NCBI RefSeq assembly: GCF_964204645.1 | Contig: NC_134029.1 | Location: 682,001 to 746,000, forward strand | Direction: 5' to 3' | Source: Tubulanus polymorphus | Lineage: Eukaryota; Animalia; Nemertea | DNA length: 64,000 bases | Shown here: positions 1 through 29,900 of the stretch, piece after piece | Layout: each line of letters opens with the position of its first letter | Position numbering within the stretch: the first letter of the stretch is position 1 | Made by a program: the position numbers and the translations under genes | Notes under the pieces: generated by a model | What the model was told of the DNA's origin: nothing | Database searches by the model: none | The model's input: only the letters and a program-made list of their open reading frames with translations

Positions 1-67
1 AATAAAACCGTTTTTATTTCATGCCTTTGTAATTTCTATATACACTTTACCATAAACGAACACCTAC

Positions 68-162
68 ATAGCAATAGTCACCAGTCGGGCAGATCTTTGG
101 TTGTGTGGCTTTGTTGCAACTGCTCTGACCCCAACATTGATAACATTTTCGTAACTTGTCTT
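68..162 (-). CDS. Exon 4: N-terminal half of LU domain 2 (gene continues beyond the window's left edge)
   Basis: Acceptor ttgtttcatttgcag|, donor |gtaggt (67). 95 nt, phase 1 to 0. Encodes (E)DKLRKCYQCWGQSSCNKATQPKICPTGDYCY, with the same length, phases and Cys positions (6,9,15,24,30) as exon 2. Confidence 0.88.
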
Positions 163-214
163 CTGCAAATGAAACAATTCCATTGTAAAACAGGACACAG
201 GTTCTGAAAGTTCA

Positions 215-305
215 GGACCCCAGTTCCACGGTTTAGGAGCTATACATTTGAAATGAACTGATTGTAACTCGGGGATAACCATAACTCGCAACTGTAGAAC
301 TAGGC
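215..305. mobile_element. Degenerate MITE copy inside intron 3 of the LU gene
   Basis: Ends ggaccccagttccac...ctgtagaactaggc are imperfect inverted repeats. Similar segments occur at ~13130-13156, ~21160-21240 and ~47875-47965. Confidence 0.6.
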
Positions 306-384
306 TTCGGTTTGTTATACCGGCAAATGAATTAGTTATTTGAAATTTATCAATAAATGTTATAGGATTCAAAAGTTAACTGAC

Positions 385-544
385 CACCGGGTGTGTATCC
401 ATTGCATCCGTCTGAATGACAACATCTTCCGTAGTAATAAATTGATTCCCTTCTCAAAGAGCTTAATTTACTTTGACAATAGGTGGCGTCGTAACAGCCC
501 TTCATTACACTTTCTGACCGACGCGGTTTTTTATAGTGCATAGT
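385..544 (-). CDS. Exon 3: C-terminal half of LU domain 1
   Basis: Acceptor ttatttttag|. Encodes TMHYKKPRRSESVMKGCYDATYCQSKLSSLRRESIYYYGRCCHSDGCNGYTPG, containing KGC and the diagnostic CCxxDxCN motif, which completes a 10-Cys domain. Probable phase-1 donor G|gtcagt at 384; if unspliced, the frame reads on to a stop at 350-352. Confidence 0.9.
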
Positions 545-672
545 CTAAAAATAAATTGATAATTAACAGAACAATTACAACAGAAGCGTCCTGAACGCGT
601 TACCTCGAAATTCTTTTTTATGAATGTCCCCGGGATTAACTAACACCTGTCCATGTAAGGATATATACTTAC

Positions 673-767
673 AATACATGTTTCAGTAGGTTTACACTTT
701 TGGCGTGATTGCGATGTCGCGCATAAATAGGCACCGCTACAACTATAACACTGTAACGCTCGTGCAC
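673..767 (-). CDS. Exon 2: N-terminal half of LU domain 1
   Basis: Acceptor atatttcag|, donor |gtaagt (672). 95 nt, phase 1 to 0. Encodes ARALQCYSCSGAYLCATSQSRQKCKPTETCI, with the LxCYxC start motif and 5 Cys. Confidence 0.92.
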
Positions 768-958
768 CTGAAATATATATTTTTGATTTTTGCAATATTA
801 TGTCGTAGAAATCTGTCCAAGAAAATAGACGATGAAAATCCATCGTTGTGAAAGAGAAAATCAGGATTCGAAACCAGTTAATTTACGAGAAGCCGATGGT
901 TTCAAAAATGAAAATTAAATTTTTCAGAAATCGGTTACTTATTTTAATATATACAAAC

Positions 959-1016
959 CCTGAAAGCATCCGACCAACACAACAACAGTGACTAAAACAT
1001 TCAAACCAGTATTCAT
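959..1016 (-). CDS. Exon 1 (signal peptide) of a multi-domain Ly6/uPAR (three-finger) protein gene
   Basis: ATG at 1016 reads MNTGLNVLVTVVVLVGCFQ-G, with a hydrophobic core. The 58-nt exon ends at a phase-1 donor G|gtttgt (958) and joins exon 2 in frame to give ...FQGARA/LQCYSC, a typical signal-peptidase context. Confidence 0.85.
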
Positions 1017-2225
1017 CTTCCAGCTTTTCTTCTACAATTTAAAGTCGATTACAATTCTAAGCCACCGGACGAGTTCTGTCACACGATTCTTTTTGAAAAT
1101 GACATAAATCTAGACGTCACATTTTTATTAATGATACTTTCCCATCAGGAAAAAAACTTACGCAACTGAATACATGTATTAATCGGGCTTAATTTGATCA
1201 TTAGATACATTAGATACATTAGATACACTATCATCCCAGTAGAACAAGTTGAACTATATTTAGGTAATAGCTAAAATGTATTTTTGACATCTTTTACTGC
1301 GATCATTAACCCCGTTCTCTACTGAAACATATGGATCGATAATCATCCTGTTCAAGGCCACCACTGTCTGTATGTGGCTTCGAGGGAGTGAATTAGCAAA
1401 AAGATAAACCACGCTTTTTCCCGATATATCGAATCATAATTCCAGGAATCTGAATTCGTTAAATTATATCTATATTCTGTTTATGATCTGCAACAGCCTA
1501 CACTACAGTATAACGCGTATCAGATACATGTATTTTGTGGCAGCCATCTCTCAGTAACTGAGTACATCCTGTTGCCGCTACTGCGCTAGCTGCTGCTGTA
1601 CTGCAAGATTCACTTATACTGTCAGCTACAAACTCACTATATTCACATAACATGTTTACCTTACCTTTTTTACCAGATATATCTATGTATGAATTCAATC
1701 CGTATCATTCCCGTCCTTATTTACTCCAGTCCTGGTTTTATCTATCTCCGCATTCTCGAATCAGACCAGGCACTCCGTATGAAACCGAGGCACTGGATAT
1801 ATCAATCAACTCCTCGGAGGATCAATGTCAAGGTCGAATAAACTTGCATATTGTCTCTTATGATATATAGAAAAGCTGTGACAATCCTGGGCTTGATTTC
1901 ACCCACGGGGCAGGCATTATCAATCGGAATTGATTTACTCCAATCCATTTTATATTTTGGATCCACGCTCCACGTCACAGTTCGCTTAGAGCCAAATTGA
2001 ACTCTAAGGAAGTGAAGGACTGCTGGTACGAGATCTTCACAGTTAAGAGTTAACTCATTAAAAAATGAATTAATTTTTACTATGCATTCAACTGTAACTC
2101 ATAACTTTCAAAGAGTTTAATTCACTTGGACACAACGTAGCGTCGTAACATCCTCGTTTAAGTTTTTCTAGTGTTTTCGATGCGGTATCGGTTAATTAGA
2201 ATTTCACGATAATGTCTGAAACACA

Positions 2226-2987: not shown

Positions 2988-3540
2988 CCTTCCACCACTA
3001 TCCCACGCGCGATTTACTCGATTCTGATAAAATAGTTGATTATCCGAATTGAGACTCGCGTGAAGAGAATGGAATGATTGTTTCAGAGTGAGTGAGATCT
3101 GCTGCAGGCTACATCACTAACAACGATCGACACGAGTTGAAGACGGATTGAAATCTAACAGAGGTAATTCATCGTTAACGCAGTGAAGTTCTATGTGAAG
3201 GGATTTAGGCTGATCTGTAGTCACTGGAGGAGAAACAGTAGATTTTTTTAAGTGTCAGTATCAAATTTGAAGTGTTAGTTTCAAATGATTAGTATGATTC
3301 TCTAAATGATTCTCTAAATAGAGAGACGCAATCGGCTGATGATGCAAGATATTTCTGTTGGGTTCGATAGAATTCTACTCGGACTGCAAAATTTAATTTC
3401 AATGTTTGATTTATCGTGACTATTTTCCTCGGCGCGTAATCTATTCTTCATGTAGAATTAAACTGTGTTCAACTAAAATTGATTTGGAAACAAAATGTAT
3501 ATCCTTGATTTCTGGCCACTGCAGTTCGAACACGCTGAAT

Positions 3541-3738
3541 ACCGAGTTCCCTGATTCTGAACTCGGTGAAATATTTACAGCAGTCTCAAACGCTACCGAG
3601 TTCCCTGATTCTGAACTCGGTGAAATATCTACAGCAGTCTCAAACACTACTGAGTTCCCTGATTCTGAACTCGGTGAAATATTTACAGCAGTCTCAAACA
3701 CTACCGAGTTCCCTGATTCTGAACTCGGTGAAATATTT
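3541..3738. repeat. 54-bp tandem repeat (~3.7 copies), each unit with a 9-bp hairpin
   Basis: Units start at 3541, 3595, 3649 and 3703; hairpin accgagttc-cctgattct-gaactcggt. Explains ORFs 3406..3873 and 3441..3701. Confidence 0.95.
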
Positions 3739-5270
3739 CCTGTAGTCCCAATACGCTACCGAATAAAGCGGAATGTTTCGTGTTCTGAATGCGCACAGTT
3801 TTTCTTGCATTTCTTCTTACAGTTTTTCTTACACTTCATATACAAAACTCTATTGAGAGGAAAATATCATTAAAAACAACTCTTCACCAAACGATACGAT
3901 ATAATGTTACAACGTATATGAATAATTGAGATAATGGACGCATCTTTCACAGTCGATCTAATGCGCGCAGTCGTGAATAGTAGAAAAACAAACTGCACTG
4001 CTTTCTCACAATCGTAACTGAAGAGTTTCCCACAAGAAAGTGACGCTAAACTTATCATTTATTCAAGTATATTCTTACTCGATTCTTACATTCGTTTCAA
4101 GTCTGGGAATTAGTTTAAAACTCACGGGACAATCCTACCGAAATATCTAACGTTTCGGAAAAAAGATCCAATATGGCCACCAGGCAGCAGTTTATTTCAA
4201 CGAGTAAAGGATATTGCCTGAACGGAAAATTCCACGAATATTGCATTTAGCTTTACCGTTTTTTTTACTCCTGTGAAAAAAACACCGTTCTTTTCATTTC
4301 TTCGAGTCGTCGAGAAAATCAATTTCAATTTGGCCGGTTAAATTGCCTACACGCCTCCTAAATGGCAACTTCGCATGTCCGCATTTTCTGGATGCTAAGT
4401 CGTCGGAAAACGATTGTTTTTCCTGCCTTCGCTTCTTGTTGGCGTCGATGATAGGAAAACGCCGCGTAACAAACGGACTGATAGCAACAACGGTAAAAAG
4501 GTGCGTGAGTTGTCACAGACAACCGTTGTCGGGTTGTAACATAATTGATTAATATTAAACCTCGTCAATTGCTACAATATCGGCCCAGACGCTGTTTTCT
4601 ATGTGGTCTGAAGCTCGCGCTGGAGCTGATAGAATATGACATGCAAATTTCAAGTAAATTAATAAAACCGTGAATGTTATAGAAATGTACAGCGCACGCA
4701 CTGTGAGCGGTCCTGTGTGATGTGTAATCAGTTATTGTAACAGTACCAGCCACTCGACGAAAAGGCCGTTTCATCGGACAGGAAACAGCGCTTTCTGGCT
4801 GACTGCTTTAATCATTTTGTTATTTGACAAACAAAAATTATATGACACATACATGACGCTTATGACTGCTGCGTGAAACACCGCTGAGCTGCCGAGCTGC
4901 AGTTCTCAATATTTACAGCCGATCAAAGCAAACCTTTTACATCGTTCACAGTTATTTCAATCAGAGTTTTACCATTTCTATTTAGGTTTCATCAACGGGA
5001 TTTTTTATTCATTTATCGGCTGGTGTGAAATGTGCATAAAACGCGTCAATATCATAAAAACATCCATCATCCATACATCGGATATCGTCGACCATTCTTG
5101 ATTACTTTCAGGGTTGTATTTGAATAGCAACCGCCGTCACCTCTATTAGTAACCAGTCCATCAATTCATTTAACAAACATTTACAACATTTTGTCGACGA
5201 TTTAAATCCGATTTACTCGACATTGTGCATTCGAAGCGCACCGATTCACAAAGATATAAGAATATAGATG

Positions 5271-6220: not shown

Positions 6221-8804
6221 TGACTGGTGTTTAAACTCTATACCGGAAACTGTGAAATCGGGCCCTAACTTTCTTAAGTTAAGAAGTGTTGAAATAAACG
6301 ATTTGACTCAGAAGTCGAACTTAAGTCGAAGGCGTTGTTCACAGAATGACTTTAATTTGTATCATTGTGACGATAATGTGGAATACTGTGAAATGTTTTT
6401 CTACGCTTTCTTCGATATCCGTTGTTTTGGTCAATGTTTGGTATTTCTAATTGAAGAATATTTAAACACGACACTAGTTACACCAGAAATACATTCTCTT
6501 TGTGTATTTTTGGCGGTACGTATATTCCATATACTTGTATCGTTCTTAACGAATTGCGCCTGCGAGTTTTCAGATAGAATTACACAATTCTCTTTTAACT
6601 GTGAATACACAGCGTCCGGTGTCCGACTATCACTTTTCAAACTGATGAAGGATTCTCTCGTGATTTTAGGAGGAAGGATAGGGTTCACTTGTATTTATTT
6701 GATATTCGATTCGTTGTTCGTCGACGGTCCGTAAAATCAAGTAAATATACTGTTATGATGCGGGTCCGATTAGACTATTCAGATATACGGTAATTTTATA
6801 CTCCCGTCGCTGTCGTAACAACGCACCTCGTCTCATCGCCTACTCGTTTAATGGACTCGAAACATCAAAACCAGCTACAAACAACTCAACGACTGCAGTC
6901 AATTGCTTTAATGCTTGTTTTAGAAAGTCTCGCGGTTCGATATCTGTCTCGAGGGACGAGAAGTTTTATTCGTATAAAAAGTCGTCGAGGAAACCATTTG
7001 AAGAGATGCAGGGGTTATTACTAGATGACAACACACGTATATCGACAATACAGGTCAGGTATGCAGACCCTGTGACCCGTAAACGATCAGATTGAGAGCG
7101 CCAAGACTAAAATCACAAACCGTGGCCCAGCAGTTGTACAGTCGTGGTACTCAATATCAAAACTTTGTGGTGACCAGTGGTAACTATAGAGGTAGCTATA
7201 CGACTGCAAATTAGTTTAATCAAGTACCGTGCGTTTACTAACTCTTTGACTACGATGTCCCCGCGCACCCCCCCCCCCCCTCCCTCATCCCCCGCACCCC
7301 CAACTCATCCCCATTATATCAATTAACCAAACGAGTCTGTAACGTTTCGGAAGAAAAATGAAATTGACATCAAAGTAAACGACATCTTTCAGATGTTTGA
7401 AAACAACCTTCACGCCAACGATATGAGATTCTTTTAATCACAACGAGCAGAAAAAAACTGTTTATTTTGTTTCTTTAAAATGTTGTCGTTATCACGAGAA
7501 ACAATAAAGTCAGAGAATATGAAAAAAAATAACTCATTGAGCTGAAAATTCACTTCTACAAAATTGTAGAATCAGCAGGCGTTTCACAGTTAAGTGAAAT
7601 GAATCTGTATTTTTGAATGTTTTAGTTTTATCTAAAAGTTGTGTGTAGTCGCAAGTTTGTTGTGTGTAGTCGCTGCAGTACCTGAAAGATGTCAGAATGA
7701 TATCAAAAAGGAGTTTGCGTTATAGATAATTCATCGAATCGTCCTTCTATCAAGATATCGCTTCTGCGAAGTTAGTACCGGTATCTAATTCGGGAAATGA
7801 AAAGATGAATTTGTATTTGTCAATGTCTTAGTGCGCTATAAGCTTTGTAGAAGTCACTGTTGTAACTGGAAGATGTCAGTATAATAAACACAGTTGAAGA
7901 GAGAGAAAGTGTTGACATGATTTCACCATTAAATTCCCATTTCAAGCTGTATTCAGATTCAATGAGATGTTCACGCATTGCCGCACAGTCGACGCTCGGA
8001 GACCTTCGCAACCTCAACTCGATTTCTTCGCCCGAAGGAATAAACACAGCGTAAATCTAATTAACACAATTATAAAACTACGTGAAGCATGTACAGAATT
8101 GATAGATCGCAATACTGCACACTACACACTACACACTACACACTACACACTACAGTACGCGTATCGAGTCTCTATCCTCGTAAGTCGTGATCAGGCAAAT
8201 ATGCAAATATTTCTGTCTCAGATCAACACCTTTGTAAATATCAGTCACGCCTGGATTTCTGTAGCATTACATCAGAAAATCTCCTCGAATTGAAAACAAT
8301 TTATTCCAAATCGTCATTTAAAGTACAAATCTTTAAGGAATAAATCTGAAATGATTAAATTATGATGGGCTACTATGAAATTAATACATTCGTATTGAAA
8401 ATGGGTTCGAATCCTGATTTCAAAACCTGAGTCGACCACTATTTTGGGAAACTGTGGGTCCTCGGCTGTTTACACAGATATTGGGCCCTCGGGGATATAT
8501 AATACACGGTGTTATGGTAGGCGTACTGATGTTATTGTAAGGACCGGTTTATTTTACTTGAGTGTCGATTGATGTTTTTGCGTATAAACGACTTCCATTG
8601 AATACGACATTAATAATTCAGATAAACGACTGACGTCGTGAGTTTCACGTTCAATAATTCTTACTCGATACAAAATGAAATGTCTCCATTTCTGATATGA
8701 TATTAATTGGTTTATTGCCTCTGAGTCGCAAACTGAGCAGCGGAAAGTGCTACTCAACGGGTATAGGAGGGCAATCTCAATCAGCAGGTAAACGGTCTGA
8801 CGGC

Positions 8805-9110
8805 TGTACCGGGGCATGGGTCTGACAGCGCGAAGCGGGTACCGGGGCACGGGTCTGACAGCGCGAAGCGGGTACCGGGGCACGGGTCTGACAGCGCGGA
8901 GCGGGTACCGGGGCACGGGTCTGACAGTGGGGAGCGGGTACCGGGGCATGGGTCTGACAGCGCGAAGCGGGTACCGGGGCACGGGTCTGACAGCGCGGAG
9001 CGGGTACCGGGGCACGGGTCTGACAGTGGGGAGCGGGTACCGGGGCATGGGTCTGACAGCGCGAAGCCGGTACTGGGGCACGGGTCTGACAGCGGGGAGC
9101 GGGTACTGGG
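8805..9110. repeat. 33-bp GC-rich minisatellite, ~9 copies
   Basis: Unit gggtaccggggca(c/t)gggtctgacag(cgcga/cgcgg/tgggg)agc. Source of ORFs 8554..9081 and 8816..9175. Confidence 0.95.
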
Positions 9111-9842
9111 GTTTATTGGGTTTAAAGGGGTACTATGTTAGGGAGACTAACAATGGTGCATTGAGGGTACGATAGACTGAAATATGGAGGTAAGGTTTGG
9201 CGAGGAGCGCTGAAGGTACAGATGGTATGACAGAATGTTTTATAGTGAGATGGTTGTCGTACCCGGGAGTATGGTCGAGTCTGGCGGTGAGACCCGTGCA
9301 GAGTAAGTTGCTGTGACAGTATCGTGGATTCTCTATCGCTGATACAGTTTTTACCGTCACTCACAGCAAGGATTACTAGTTTTATAATAGAAATAGCGAT
9401 GATTATATCATACATATGACACCACAGAATAGGGATCAGTAAACCCGAACTGCTGAGACGTTGAAGGGCTACACTTGAGCCGCGCTGAGAATTAGCTGAC
9501 AATCACTGAAATAATCCTCTGAATAAGTACCCAAAAAACCAGTCAGAAATTATCATCTCTGACGCCTAGGAATCAGACAGTCATAGTACAATATATAATC
9601 CTGTGTACGATACTCGATTGGATTTAGAGATTTCTCGAGCGGTCGGGTGGTAAAGCCTTACTACTTATATGTGTTCCCTGTAGTGATCTAACATCCATCA
9701 ATGTCAATGACATTCACTGATCACTGTTTTCTGCTTATCTGGTTACACACCCACGTGGTCAATAGGTTTCCGCCAGTCTGAAATTGTATCTGACGTTTTA
9801 TCGTAGCTTAATGCCTGCTGAAATATCGAACAAAAAAAACCT

Positions 9843-21876: not shown

Positions 21877-23940
21877 AGTTACATTACAGAAAACATGTCG
21901 TATTATATTGAATTCCGATGATAGTCGCTGATGTAGTTCGCTTTTATCTGTTTGTAAAGCTGCAAAATTTAACGTTCTATTGTGATATTTATTCAAGAGA
22001 AAGGGATATTTGAATATCAATATTTTACTACACGTGTTCAGCTCTGTGTGCGGTTTGTATGGACGAATTCATTGATCTCTACTGGTTTTACATCTGTACA
22101 TTTGACAGTCACCAATACATAGACATTAAACATGTCAATATTCGAGGTCCCAGTTACATACGATCAATGTACGAGGCTGCACTAAAGGCTATCCACCCAT
22201 TGCAGCATTAGATTTGTGTCAATTTTTAGGTGCAAATTTTGGATGTTTCTCTATACACGGATGAAAATCTCACAGATTCTTAAACGTAACCGCATTGTCG
22301 TGTTGTAAATGTTGTTCATAAGATTTTTAGAATATATGTTTTGACTTTCGGCAATGGCAGCCCTCCCTGCTAGATTGAAAACTCTAACACTTAGGATAAA
22401 AAGTCATTATCAATCTAACTATTGCAGCAGTTCAATAATTCAACTGATCTTTATTTGGACCATTCTATTCTTAACAGTTCATTTCAATTGATGCCACGGT
22501 TTGGACGTTAGAAGTCAGATATTTTTCAGGTCCGATACGGTCACCAGATACTCCACGCATAAAGACCGTATATTCACGAATATGTCGAATCTATTGGATT
22601 TTAAAATGTCCAGAACCAGACAAAACTGACCAAACAATGACATGATACCTTAACAGGCCACACCTATCACAAGCGGCTATCGCTGAAATATTCTACTGAA
22701 ACGATGCTCGATTCAATAAAAGTTTTATAAGCATTACGGAATTTTTATGGATCGGATTGTTTTAGGCAAACATAAACGCGCGGATAAAAGAGATGTCGGA
22801 TTTTCCAAACATTTGCCTCATTGGCGCTGTCCCGCTCTGATCCATTACAGCATCAATAGCGATTCGAAATAAAAAATTGTGTGAACTATTTGATTAGTTC
22901 CACGCGATAAATGTTGATGATGATGATGATGATGACAATAATGATGATGATGATGTTGATGATATTTTACTGGTAGATGACGTTATCGATTTTATTTACC
23001 CACATCAAACGCGTGTATAATGAATATAAAACAGACACACGCGAATAATGTAAATAATCTTCAGTTTACACAAATCATTGTAAATAGATTCATTAATTTC
23101 TCTCTGTTTCTGATGTCTCTGTTTTATTTTCTATGATGTTAGATTATTCCGTTTTTACATTTGACACATTAGACGCACACGCAGGCGTGCGGGGTACGTG
23201 GTGCGGGGTGCGGGCGGATGCTGGATGATATTTGAGATGTTTTATCGGGCGCTGTTTGATATATCGATGATAAGTTTTCAGCTCGTTTATTAACATTAGT
23301 TTGACTCGATTCTAAACGCAAATTACAAGCCGTAATTTTTAATCACGTTTATTTATATTTATTCGTCGTCATAAATTCAGAAGCGCCAACATAAAATAAT
23401 GAATCCATTTATATCCGCTATATTAAAATATATATAGATCGATGGTTTATTATATTTAGCAAAAAGATTTTAAATTCTTCATCGTTAAAAACTTCCTCAT
23501 TCCGCTTGTAAACATCTATCAATATTCTATACCTGTAACACCGCAATCCCTCTGTCCGATCTCACACTCTCATCACTAATGTATTTCTTTGTCACATTTT
23601 GTATGGCTTTGTATTAACACTTTTGTTTTATTATATGCCGAAGTTCAAAGCTTAGTTAAAAGCAACAATTATACCGAACAACAACTAAAAGATCTGTTTC
23701 ACTGATATTTCGGTATCGTGACCTCTCTTAACAAGGAGATGATGTAGACCTTGATAAATCGATTCACTGTATTCACGATTTCTTATAAATAGACATTTTG
23801 AAGGATGGATCGTTTTTGTTTGTTTGGCTCTTTGCAGAACTAAACTTTTCGTTGTTCGTTGTGAGTAGTTTTCCAGACGTTTTTACGATGAAAAAAAATT
23901 TAAACAGTTCGGAAACTGTAAACTCTGAAATGGCGTCCGA

Positions 23941-24029
23941 AGCAGCGGCAGCACCAGCACCACCAACTGCAGTACCAGCACCCCCAGCAGCAGTACCAGC
24001 ACCAGTAGCAGCAGCAGTAGCAGCAGCAG
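23941..24029. repeat. Degenerate CAG/CAC trinucleotide tract
   Basis: agcagcggcagcaccagcaccacca...gcagcagcag. Confidence 0.8.
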
Positions 24030-24794
24030 TATCTAATCTTGGTTGATGTAAGGCGAGACCTGGTGCAATATCATCATCATCAGATCTTCCGTCCGCATAA
24101 ACACTCATTCGTTATGAATAGGACGGAAATTAAAACATAAATATTGTCGGTAGTTGACGAGAGAGAGATAGATATTGATGTAGTACTGATAAAGTTTATT
24201 ACTGTAAGAGTCACAAATATAGAATATGAGAGTGAAAAACTGCTTGAAGCCCTCCCGACGACGGATGTGCACTTTTGCCCGTTTTGACGACGGGCGATTT
24301 AATCAAGCAAACGATATCAGTTTACTAAGTATTTCCCGTTCGTATCGTCGACAAGAGCACTCACCAATATCTCCTATCAACAAAACACTGAAATAAAATC
24401 AGCCCTTTCGATGTTCTAATTATGCCGATTCGAAGTGGCTTCGACGTCATACGACGACAGCGCTGACTGGTGTACATCAGTTCCGTAATATTGGTCATTT
24501 TATCAGACTGCGATTTTTTTCCGGTTGTTAAATGTGGGATTCGAACCTGATGGCTTAACGAAACTCGGTCATATAGCGGCTTTGAGGTCGTGTAGCCTAA
24601 CCAATATAGGGGTTCGGCAGTCGCGCATATCGTTCACATACGTCATTGTCTGTCAAATTCAATGAATACTGCAAGGTCACATGGTCGTCCTTTAGTTCTG
24701 GCGGACAATTGGCAGTCTGTGACGTCACGTACATGAACCTCGAAGCTACCACTATATACACAATAGTTATAGCGAAAGCCCGAACTTTAAATGA

Positions 24795-25701: not shown

Positions 25702-26845
25702 AGCAGTATTTTTGTCTTCACATTTAGTGGTTTGGTTAACACGCCTCCTCCACAATAACTCTATTATCCATCTTTATGAAATGTATTCAAATTTCATTTG
25801 TATTTGCCGCCGCAGGTGCTGTTAGTATGAAATATTCCGTGTTTGGTATTTAGAAAGTTCAAGATGATTTCGATTGTTTTCCTCCCGTTAGAAATAGAAC
25901 ACGCGACTCGTTATTACAGTTTTAACTTACATTATACATTATAATGTCGTCGTTGATATTTGATAGGTACCTTCTGTAATTCAACAGTCGCCGATTATAA
26001 GTACAAAACACAAAATCATTTCATTCGGAGAAGATGAAATCAAGTTGTTTTATCTTAAAAATAGAATATATTTACTGGGTGCGGCGAAAAAAGTACAGTG
26101 ATTTCTATTAAGCAAAATAATAAATACATTTGCGAGTTGAATTCAAATCCCAGCGCAAAGAAATATCTTATTTTTCGGGTTTTTGACTCTGAGTCCAATC
26201 ATCATCAGAGCGATAATGAAGATATTTCATCAGATTTTGCATTTCTAATTCATCTATATATTGAGAGGAAACATCAGTCAGTCTACACTGCAGTCATACA
26301 GAGAACATTTACTTCAACTTCGGTTTGACGTTGATAATGAAATTATAAGTCCATTCCTGATGTTTTAGTCATACTCAAAATGTGCAAACGAGAACGATAT
26401 GAAACCGGATCCTACTGAGACCTAGAATTGAACTTTATTATTGAGTCAAATTCTGAACCCAAGTTTGAACTCGAAATGGATGCAGTTCATTTCCAATAGA
26501 ACGACAATTTTCATCGAATCCTGGCGAAAACTAGCAGTAAGGCTTCGAAACTGCCCCGGTAAGCGAGTAGTTGCTCAGCGCGTGCGTGGATAGGTATTTC
26601 ACATGGAAATACCGGAGACGCCCATTTAATGTTACGTAACCGCGGTAATCGTAAAATCTGAGATTGAGATAGAAATAATGACGCTATAAAGAAATTGAAG
26701 TTGATTGATATGTATATTATAACGCACGATCAGCTCGCATCATTAAAGAGATGATGTCAGTTGGGAAATAAAATTATTTCCTCGCTTTAGAAAATTGACT
26801 TTCTCTAAGCAATAACTATGTGGGTTGTATGACGGGCGCTCCGTT

Positions 26846-26902
26846 TGCTGCTGCTGCTGGTGCTGGTGCTGCTGGTGCTGGTGCTGGTGCTGCTGCTGCT
26901 GG

Positions 26903-26945
<43 letters not shown>

Positions 26946-26972
26946 ACTGCTGGTGCTGCTGCTGCTGGTGGT
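26846..26972. repeat. (CTG/GTG)n trinucleotide tract
   Basis: Read directly; produces the Ala/Gly and Cys/Trp ORFs. Confidence 0.95.
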
Positions 26973-29900
26973 GTAATTTTGAGTTCAAATTTCTTTGTGA
27001 ATTCTTCAGAATCTGCAATTGATTATCTATTATCTATTGAGAATAACACAGGGGCCGGTTGTGTCAGTTTTGAATTTAACCGCCCCTCTCGCAGACCAAT
27101 AGTATATGAATTACCGAGTTGACTCAATGATCCGTTGCGGTCAGGTATTGGTACTTACTTGCACAACGACAAAATGTCTCGAACCAGATCAGACAATGAC
27201 AAACACAATAGCGAATTAAGTCTTCATTTAATTCGATAATGCTGTAAATTCTAATCTAAGAGTTAATTCTGGTTTTGAAGGTGACACTTGTCTATACGAG
27301 ATGCTGGTGCCTGGGTGAGATACTCAGTTCTATCTGACTGCAGTCTAGTGTGACTGATCTCTCCACTGGAGTCCCGCCCAGTAATTACAGATAACATTCA
27401 CATGCTGACTATAAAATCCAACCCGTCAGCCCGTGTTGACAAGCACCCGTTAAAAATATAATGAATTCTCTATTTTTTCTTAAACATCGCATAAACATTG
27501 ACGACACCGGCCGGTCTTATTTTGATTAATATTTTTATAAGAAATATGTTAAAATTCGACCCTGTATTCATCAGAGTAACCAATACAACGATAGTTTATG
27601 ATACTTAGGTATATGTTACCGGAATATTGAAATATCGAACGACCGATGTTTGTGACAAGTTTCAGAGATAAGCAACTGATAAGATACGATATACCCTAGA
27701 GCAGGGAATTGCTGCATTATCAATGTGATGACTGAAAGAGTGAGAGAGATGGTCGTTTATTCAGACGTATCGAATATCACCTTCAGGGCTGTTGTATATG
27801 TACTGGTATTGCTGCTCTTCTGGAAGGTCGCTTCCCTGATATCAGTAGGGAAGTATTAGTTAATACATCCACGATATGAGTAAATACTACTGTGTCACTA
27901 CGAATGCTCTTGTATATTTACTTTGTATCGTTAACCTGCGGAAAACTGCGGATAAAACGACTCGCATCATTCCCGTCAATCTCAGCTGAATACTGTTATT
28001 TTGTAACGACGACGCCTTCGGTGTCAAAAACTGTGATTCCCGTGAAATCTCTAACGGGTCAGAGCTGCGCGGTCAAAGATTTATATGTCAGCTCTATTTA
28101 AATTATGCGCCAATCTAATGGCTTAAGACTATGTTAAAACCAAATTTTGGACTGTTCAATCGGAATCTGGAATCCTCAAGAGTCTACATCGTATGATACG
28201 CAAAAGACTGAATGAATATTCAGATTCTCTGTGGTTTATATAACAAAATACACTCGATACATTTTTAGAATCCCTTTTATCAGGTGTGGTTTTAGAGACG
28301 GCGCATCTTCGAGATCAAAAGCTTGACGTCGATTTTGCTATTGATTAAGGCAGAAAAAATGGATATACATTAAACAGTCTGTGGATACACCTCCCAGTCC
28401 AGCATCCACACCCAAAACACGCGACATAAAACATATCTTTGATAATCGAGGTAGTGCTATTAAAGTATTGTATTCCAACAGTCGCAAAATGGTTGATTTT
28501 TTTCTATTATTTTGATAAAGTGCGAAATGATCGATCGCATCAGAAGGCACTGAGACTTTATTTAGATCGTTGACTAAAGTGATTGAAGGGTGCCTCCCAC
28601 CAAAAGGATCTGTAGCGCAAAAAGACACATACCCTCAAACTATGTATTACAAACCGAATAAATTCACGGTAAAAACATCATGACTTTTTAGATGATTTGT
28701 GGATCTCCAAAATCAAGGCCAAAGTTGCCATTATCACTGGTTAAATTGGTAGATGTTCAATATTAAAGGAATGAAATATTATGAATATGATACTCGATTG
28801 TCAGATTTAAACTTGTAACTATTATTTCGGGTTCAGAAATTGATATCCTATTCTAATTAAAACGGTTATTAATAGACCACGAACCTCGGTGTTCTATTTA
28901 TATTATTATGGATTCGCCTGTAATCATCACCCGGGGCTCAATACATTATTAATTTGTAAATTAATTCTCCTAGCGCGAATAGAGAGAAGAGAGAAAGGAG
29001 AGAGAGAGGAGAGAGGGGAGAGAAGCGGTCGAGATTGAACAGATTAAAGACATTACGTGCACCGCTGTAAGATAATCCCTGGGCGTTTAATTCCAGCCAC
29101 GAGATGTCGGTTCAATGATGATTCAAAGTACGCCAGCTTTAAACTCTAACGATTCTAACGGTTCTAACAGTTTTCTCAGTTCAAATTTGGCACTTACAGA
29201 TTAAACACAGCTTGGCGCTACAGTTTAAAAATTGGAATCGAACTCATGTATGTAAAGTCAAACCAGCTGTTCACACTTTATACTTGTTAAAAGGTTGATT
29301 ATATTCAACCATGGACATATAAACTACATAGTTCATAGTGTCCTTGATTTAATACAAGGCCTAGATCCAAGTTGTTGGGTTGAATGCGGATCTAGAGTCA
29401 TCAAAACTCGATCGATAATTTTTGAACAAGTTCAAAATCTAACCGGAAACGATGGATCTAGGACCGGCTATGTCACGTGGTTGTTTGTCTGCTTTTATCA
29501 TCGTAAAGACCTGATATCTGATTTGAGTAGAAGTTTCTTATTTCGTTTAAATGTTGGTTCATTTGTTAAATGCCTGCAGTCATTAACGGCGACAAGTTGG
29601 TGACGTGTAGAATACTCGCTAACGTGTGCTCCGTGTATTTAAAACCCTAGGGGTAAGAATAGAAGGCGTTCGCTTCACAAATCGCGTGAAACCACGTTCA
29701 GATCTCTTTGAAATGTAAACTTCTCATCATTAATTAATACGAATTCAATTCAGACCCAGAAGCAAATCAAGAGTCGACTTCATTAGATAGAATAAAAAAC
29801 CGTGTTCGTTCGGTAAAAACATCGATTGGCTGAAGGGTAGAATATATTCTAGATTGATTACTATGGACGCCGGTTACAGAGACACCGACAATAATCATGA

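Follow-up and report, generated by a model that had tools for sequence, protein, structure and literature searches.

What kind of gene lies on the minus strand at 68..1016 of the 64,000-nt stretch analysed here (the window, G000:C5:682001-746000), how many domains does it encode, and where would its product be located? The DNA comes from Tubulanus polymorphus, a palaeonemertean ribbon worm. An earlier note had described this locus as a hidden gene for a secretory-pathway protein with tandem three-finger domains built by exon-pair duplication, possibly with further domains and a toxin-like or mucosal role. Our analysis indicated that the locus is very probably a five-exon protein-coding gene, LOC141905939, which encodes a precursor with two LU domains and a GPI-type signal and is an ordinary member of a large known family.

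Gene structure and the public gene model

The exons were located on the minus strand. Exon 1 (1016..959, 58 nt) contained the ATG and the signal peptide; it encoded residues 1-19 and ended on the first base of the Gly20 codon. Exon 2 (767..673, 95 nt, phase 1-0) encoded the end of the signal peptide and the N-terminal half of LU domain 1 (LQCYSC; Cys 26, 29, 35, 44, 50). The C-terminal half of domain 1 (Cys 68, 74, 92, 93, 98; CCHSDGCN) and the interdomain linker were supplied by exon 3 (544..385, 160 nt, phase 0-1). In the case of exon 4 (162..68, 95 nt, phase 1-0), the N-terminal half of LU domain 2 was found (KCYQC; Cys 111, 114, 120, 129, 135). The donors of exons 1-4 were, in order, GTTTGT, GTAAGT, GTCAGT, and GTAGGT. 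The acceptors of introns 1-4 were ..TTTCAG, ..TTTTAG, ..TTGCAG, and ..TTTCAG, and all acceptors in the gene were pyrimidine-rich AG. The introns measured 191, 128, 222, and 85 nt in order, and two codons were split, GGT for Gly20 and GAA for Glu105. These four exons, their phases, and the GT/AG splice sites were as the earlier note described them.

Intron 4 occupied positions 1..67 of the window on the minus strand, which were the first 67 of its 85 nt. A downstream exon completing domain 2 had been predicted, and it was present in the flanking 10 kb on the left side of the window. Exon 5 was found 85 nt past exon 4, across the left edge of the window, at G000:C5:681746-681982 (L009 9982..9746, minus strand). 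The acceptor TTTGTTTCAG preceded its frame, and it was the sole open frame with a CCxxxxCN motif in these 10 kb. Its product of 78 residues consisted of the C-terminal half of domain 2 (SGC...CQSKL...CCATNGCN; Cys 153, 160, 177, 178, 183), followed by RPPGFSGSGYRLK, a hydrophobic end of 17 residues, and TAA. The coding sequence of 645 nt gave 214 residues. An AATAAA was located approximately 360 nt past the stop codon and was conserved in a paralogue on the same contig (C5:10057027-10057905). The 3' untranslated region also held a (TA)n microsatellite of approximately 45 nt directly after the stop (C5:681697-681741, L009 9697-9741), which was missing from the paralogue.

The 214-residue product was identical to RefSeq XP_074651154.1, "uncharacterized protein LOC141905939" of Tubulanus polymorphus (Nemertea). 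The exon translations matched this entry letter for letter at residues 1-19, 21-51, 52-104, 106-136, and 137-214, and residues 20 and 105 corresponded to the two split codons. The junctions are therefore shared with a RefSeq model built independently. The gene is annotated but unnamed, and the description of it as hidden did not hold. Searches on the genomic model were run exon by exon; full-length analyses were performed on XP_074651154.1 only, which was checked piecewise against the exons.

Relatives of the protein were sought in several ways. A word search with XP_074651154.1 against protein libraries returned only the entry itself, and the same search with exon 5 returned no candidate. A profile of C-terminal half domains (exon 5, the paralogue exon 5, and exon 3) was compared with 1.84 billion representative proteins and gave one strong match, XP_074651154.1 (E 1.8e-59). 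Two bacterial repeat proteins also appeared in the profile search (E 5e-6 and 5e-4) and were taken as chance matches of low-complexity Cys/Asn/Gly repeats. Close relatives appeared to be absent from the libraries searched, which perhaps hold few nemertean proteins; this would not imply that the protein is confined to the species. In the genome itself, at least seven more exon-level matches to UPAR_LY6 (PF00021) turned up on other contigs in a genome-wide six-frame scan.

The surroundings of the gene were also examined. Neighbouring paralogues had been proposed as a check. When the window and the 10 kb on its left flank were scanned for motifs, no further LU exon appeared, and a tandem paralogue cluster was rejected. 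Matches of the Cys-motif scan at window 23903-24070 and 26816-27019 were false; both are simple TG/GC-rich stretches of low complexity whose translations are strings of Cys/Trp. At window 3406-3873 and 8554-9175, open frames in both orientations encoded peptide repeats (TEFPDSELGEI; PRYPLRAVRPV), and these were probably tandem DNA repeats and not genes. An Rfam search of window 1-1400 gave nothing real. Intron 3 contained a dispersed element of approximately 100 nt at window 205-310, whose ends were inverted repeats (GTTCCACAGTT.TGAGTTA ... TAACTC.CAACTGT.GAAC). Copies were found in L003-L008 and in more than 20 other places, and the element resembles a miniature inverted-repeat transposable element. 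It was also present in intron 3 of the paralogue, which indicated that it is older than the duplication.

Domain family, fold, and origin of the two-domain layout

XP_074651154.1 matched Pfam UPAR_LY6 (PF00021) with 51.8 bits (cut-off 24.8, E 1.2e-13) in two stretches, the first at residues 23-99. Toxin_TOLIP was matched with 31.8 bits (cut-off 21.2), also in two stretches, and QVR (PF17064) was absent at E up to 10. Single exons gave UPAR_LY6 matches below threshold, as expected for half domains. Exon 3 alone gave E 5e-4 over profile positions 41-80 of 82, corresponding to the C-terminal half, and exon 4 alone gave E 0.031 over positions 3-30 of 82, corresponding to the N-terminal part. Exon 5 alone had no Pfam match, and exon 2 alone had none except Phage_GP58, which was taken as chance; in the full-length protein its half domain fell within the UPAR_LY6 stretch at 23-99.

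Both domains contained ten Cys at canonical spacing and ended in CCxxxxCN. LU domain 1 extended from Cys26 to Asn99 (Cys 26, 29, 35, 44, 50, 68, 74, 92, 93, 98; spacing 3-6-9-6-18-6-18-1-5), and LU domain 2 from Cys111 to Asn184 (Cys 111, 114, 120, 129, 135, 153, 160, 177, 178, 183; spacing 3-6-9-6-18-7-17-1-5). The motifs given for the Ly6/uPAR family are LxCxxC and CCxxxxCN (PMC4839075). LxCxxC was present in domain 1 as LQCYSC; domain 2 (LRKCYQC) kept CxxC with Leu one place further out. The linker from the last Cys of domain 1 to the first Cys of domain 2 was 12 residues long. Judged by the Pfam score and the Cys scaffold, the product belongs to the Ly6/uPAR (LU, three-finger) domain family. 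These results were consistent with the proposed secretory-pathway protein with tandem LU domains, a fixed Cys scaffold, and diverged loops. The further domains that had been considered were not found, and XP_074651154.1 held exactly two. The net charge was +7 for domain 1 and +6 for domain 2. A basic HYKKPRRS stretch had been offered as a functional clue, and we regard this as a guess.

A three-finger fold is likely. The AlphaFold2 model computed from one sequence alone was poor (mean pLDDT 56.7, pTM 0.32), and uPAR and C4.4A were among its weak structural matches. Foldseek ranked uPAR and long-chain alpha-neurotoxins highest for this model, at E values no better than 0.03. In the VIA-align comparison, domain 1 gave Z of approximately 4.7 against TEX101, kappa-bungarotoxin, CD59, Prod1, GPIHBP1, and CD177, among unrelated small folds, and domain 2 was badly modelled. 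The ESM Atlas held the sequence with its own model (pLDDT 0.72), and its neighbours by features and structure were all Ly6/uPAR, CD59, quiver-type, and arthropod multi-LU (DUF753) clusters. Each domain would form the usual five disulfides together with the three-finger fold.

We then compared the two domains exon by exon, and z values were obtained by shuffling the other residues with Cys fixed. Exons 2 and 4 were each 95 nt long, with entry phase 1 and exit phase 0, and had Cys at the same five positions. Only 2 of the 26 other residues were common (z 0.8), as the earlier note had observed, and at the level of sequence there is no similarity between them beyond the Cys scaffold. In the case of exons 3 and 5, 13 of 42 non-Cys residues were identical (z 6.7), including the common CQSKL.

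Within this genome, both domains were most closely related to a single-domain Ly6-type gene at G000:C6:19328458-19329440 (L017 2458-3440, minus strand). Its N-terminal-half exon measured 95 nt, with phase 1-0 (RALQCYNCPNFSSC), and its final exon encoded the second half domain with CCATDKCN, together with a hydrophobic tail. The signal exon of this gene was not found. Exon 5 matched its last exon with z 6.3 and exon 4 matched its 95-nt exon with z 4.1, and the similarity of this gene to either domain was comparable to that between the two domains. A typical Ly6 gene has a signal exon, two exons for the mature part, and the GPI signal in the last (PMC4839075). In LOC141905939 the signal exon was succeeded by two exons for each LU domain, and the fifth and final exon carried the GPI-type signal. 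Its exon pair corresponds to the standard Ly6 module; the pair was found in the C6 gene too and was not peculiar to LOC141905939.

Exons 2 and 3 together comprised 255 nt with phase 1 at both ends, so that a copy put in a phase-1 intron keeps the frame. The two-domain layout arose by doubling of this standard two-exon LU module. The sequences give no sign of a recent doubling of the exon pair. As for the proposed exon-pair duplication, the doubling itself was real, as indicated by exons 3 and 5, and is probably old; its lineage-specific character was not upheld.

Terminal signals, the sister copy, and alternative readings

XP_074651154.1 contained hydrophobic stretches at residues 4-21 and 198-214 only. 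The signal peptide was assigned to approximately residues 1-23, with a hydrophobic core at 4-21 and a cleavage-type motif ARA|LQ completed in exon 2. A GPI signal had been among the features to be looked for, and a GPI-type tail was found in exon 5. It consisted of GFSGSG at approximately 188-193, a short polar spacer YRLK, and the hydrophobic tail at 198-214. Both signals were judged by hydropathy and small-residue rules only. No N-glycosylation sequon was found in XP_074651154.1. The tail would be exchanged for a GPI anchor, leaving a mature protein of approximately 165-170 residues attached to the outer membrane leaflet of the cell. Other tethered Ly6 proteins act as binding or accessory modules, among them Lynx1 and quiver (on ion channels), CD59, and C4.4A. 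By analogy, the tethered protein might serve another surface protein, or a ligand, in the same capacity.

A partial sister copy of the gene, the paralogue mentioned above, was located 9.4 Mb away on the same contig (G000:C5:10057027-10057905, L010 7027-7905, minus strand) and comprised exons 3, 4, and 5 with the 3' flank. Its similarity began within intron 2 and continued through exons 3-5 and the 3' flank, and no counterparts of exons 1 and 2 were found within 12 kb upstream. The copy had an in-frame TAG at the 14th codon of its exon 3 and a 9-nt deletion in its exon 5. Its splice sites were intact, none of the Cys of domain 2 had been lost, and the hydrophobic tail was present. No protein from it appeared in the word searches with exon 5 and XP_074651154.1. 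Exons 3, 4, and 5 were 89, 87, and 82% identical between the gene and the copy, and the introns 75, 67, and 65%. The dN/dS value between them was 0.38, which indicated purifying selection. This value was below the expectation for a copy dead since the duplication; the sister copy may be only recently dead, or it may still use its last two exons.

These observations bear on two other readings of the locus. One is that the product is a soluble two-domain three-finger protein, a toxin-like component or a component of defensive mucus, and not tethered to the cell. The Toxin_TOLIP match above cut-off, the net basic charge of both domains, and the fact that GPI proteins are sometimes shed would fit such a protein. 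[quoted passage not shown] However, the 17-residue hydrophobic tail after small residues has the form of a GPI signal, and both the paralogue copy and the C6 single-domain gene have retained this form despite free sequence drift. Known three-finger toxins are single-domain proteins without such a tail. Since Toxin_TOLIP and UPAR_LY6 both model the same three-finger/LU fold, the Toxin_TOLIP match was no marker of a toxin. A secreted role is possible, and the anchor-type tail would count against it. Against the toxin-like or mucosal secreted role of the earlier note, the C-terminal anchor signal argues for a membrane tether, and we consider a soluble product improbable.

The other reading takes the locus as a decaying or unexpressed copy whose open frame was kept by chance. 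The broken sister copy and the lack of an orthologue in the protein libraries searched would fit this reading. Against this, the locus had five open exons, canonical splice sites, and all 20 scaffold Cys. Its exons were clearly better kept than its introns relative to the sister copy, with the low dN/dS value, and RefSeq models it as protein-coding. A decaying copy is thus very improbable. The preferred reading, a functional gene for a tethered two-LU-domain protein, was consistent with these data, and the RefSeq model and the sequence constraint suggested that LOC141905939 is expressed.

Comparison with known Ly6/uPAR systems

The protein was compared with single-domain GPI-anchored Ly6 proteins, namely CD59, Lynx1, the Ly6 antigens, and quiver/sleepless of Drosophila. 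They were alike in the signal peptide, the ten-Cys LU domain with CCxxxxCN, and the GPI-type tail. LxCxxC was common to them and domain 1. The gene plan, in which a signal exon precedes a pair of exons for each domain, was also alike (PMC4839075). However, these proteins have one LU domain, whereas LOC141905939 encodes two in tandem. Clusters of CD59, quiver, and UPAR/Ly6 were among the nearest ESM Atlas neighbours, while the QVR family of Pfam had no match. No solved member of the family gave a significant pairwise match (best E 0.07-1.5).

In the case of the mammalian multi-LU proteins C4.4A/LYPD3, Haldisin/LYPD5, TEX101, CD177, and uPAR, the tandem LU domains on a GPI anchor and the exon pair per domain were shared. 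The N-terminal LU domain of mammalian multi-LU proteins is invariably without disulfide Db3, formed by Cys7 and Cys8 (PMC7053344). In contrast to the first domain of the uPAR/C4.4A type, domain 1 of LOC141905939 kept both of these Cys (74, 92) and all ten Cys. Unlike the mammalian proteins, it also had no Ser/Thr/Pro-rich stalk and no N-glycosylation sequon. A phmmer search of PDB sequences gave CD177 with E 1.5, and uPAR and C4.4A were not listed at E up to 10. Since domain 1 had all ten Cys and there was no sequence tie, the gene was not filed with the uPAR/C4.4A group. Independent doubling appears more likely than orthology with the mammalian multi-LU proteins.

The value of this result is mainly in annotation, and there is little beyond it. 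The "uncharacterized protein" of Tubulanus polymorphus can be labelled as GPI-anchored with two LU domains. The 95-nt phase 1-0 exon common to unrelated LU genes of this worm showed that the two-exon LU module, and the ease of its duplication, are conserved well outside vertebrates. A larger meaning is rather unlikely. It would require that the protein is an independently evolved two-LU surface protein with five disulfides in both domains, a nemertean-specific tethered modulator of neuronal receptors or channels, or the membrane-bound precursor of a defensive secretion. If it is true, a two-LU protein with five disulfides in each domain would break the rule, derived from mammals, that the first domain lacks a disulfide. 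The ten Cys of domain 1 suggested that the first domain without Db3 may hold for the vertebrate uPAR/C4.4A cluster only.

The snake three-finger toxins were linked to this protein by the two Toxin_TOLIP matches above cut-off. Domain 2 aligned with long-chain alpha-neurotoxins through CC(A/S)T(N/D)xCN, with a pairwise E of only approximately 0.09. However, the toxins are secreted single-domain proteins without a GPI tail, whereas LOC141905939 encodes two domains and a hydrophobic C-terminal tail. For invertebrates, a survey from 2026 covers 387 genomes; it recorded three-finger proteins from all phyla and 58 genes for three-finger (LU-domain) proteins in its single nemertean genome (PMC13719153). 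The standard invertebrate architecture in that survey was a signal peptide, one to three LU domains, and a GPI site or a transmembrane helix (PMC13719153). The product of LOC141905939, with its signal peptide, LU domains only, and GPI site, was of the same architecture class.
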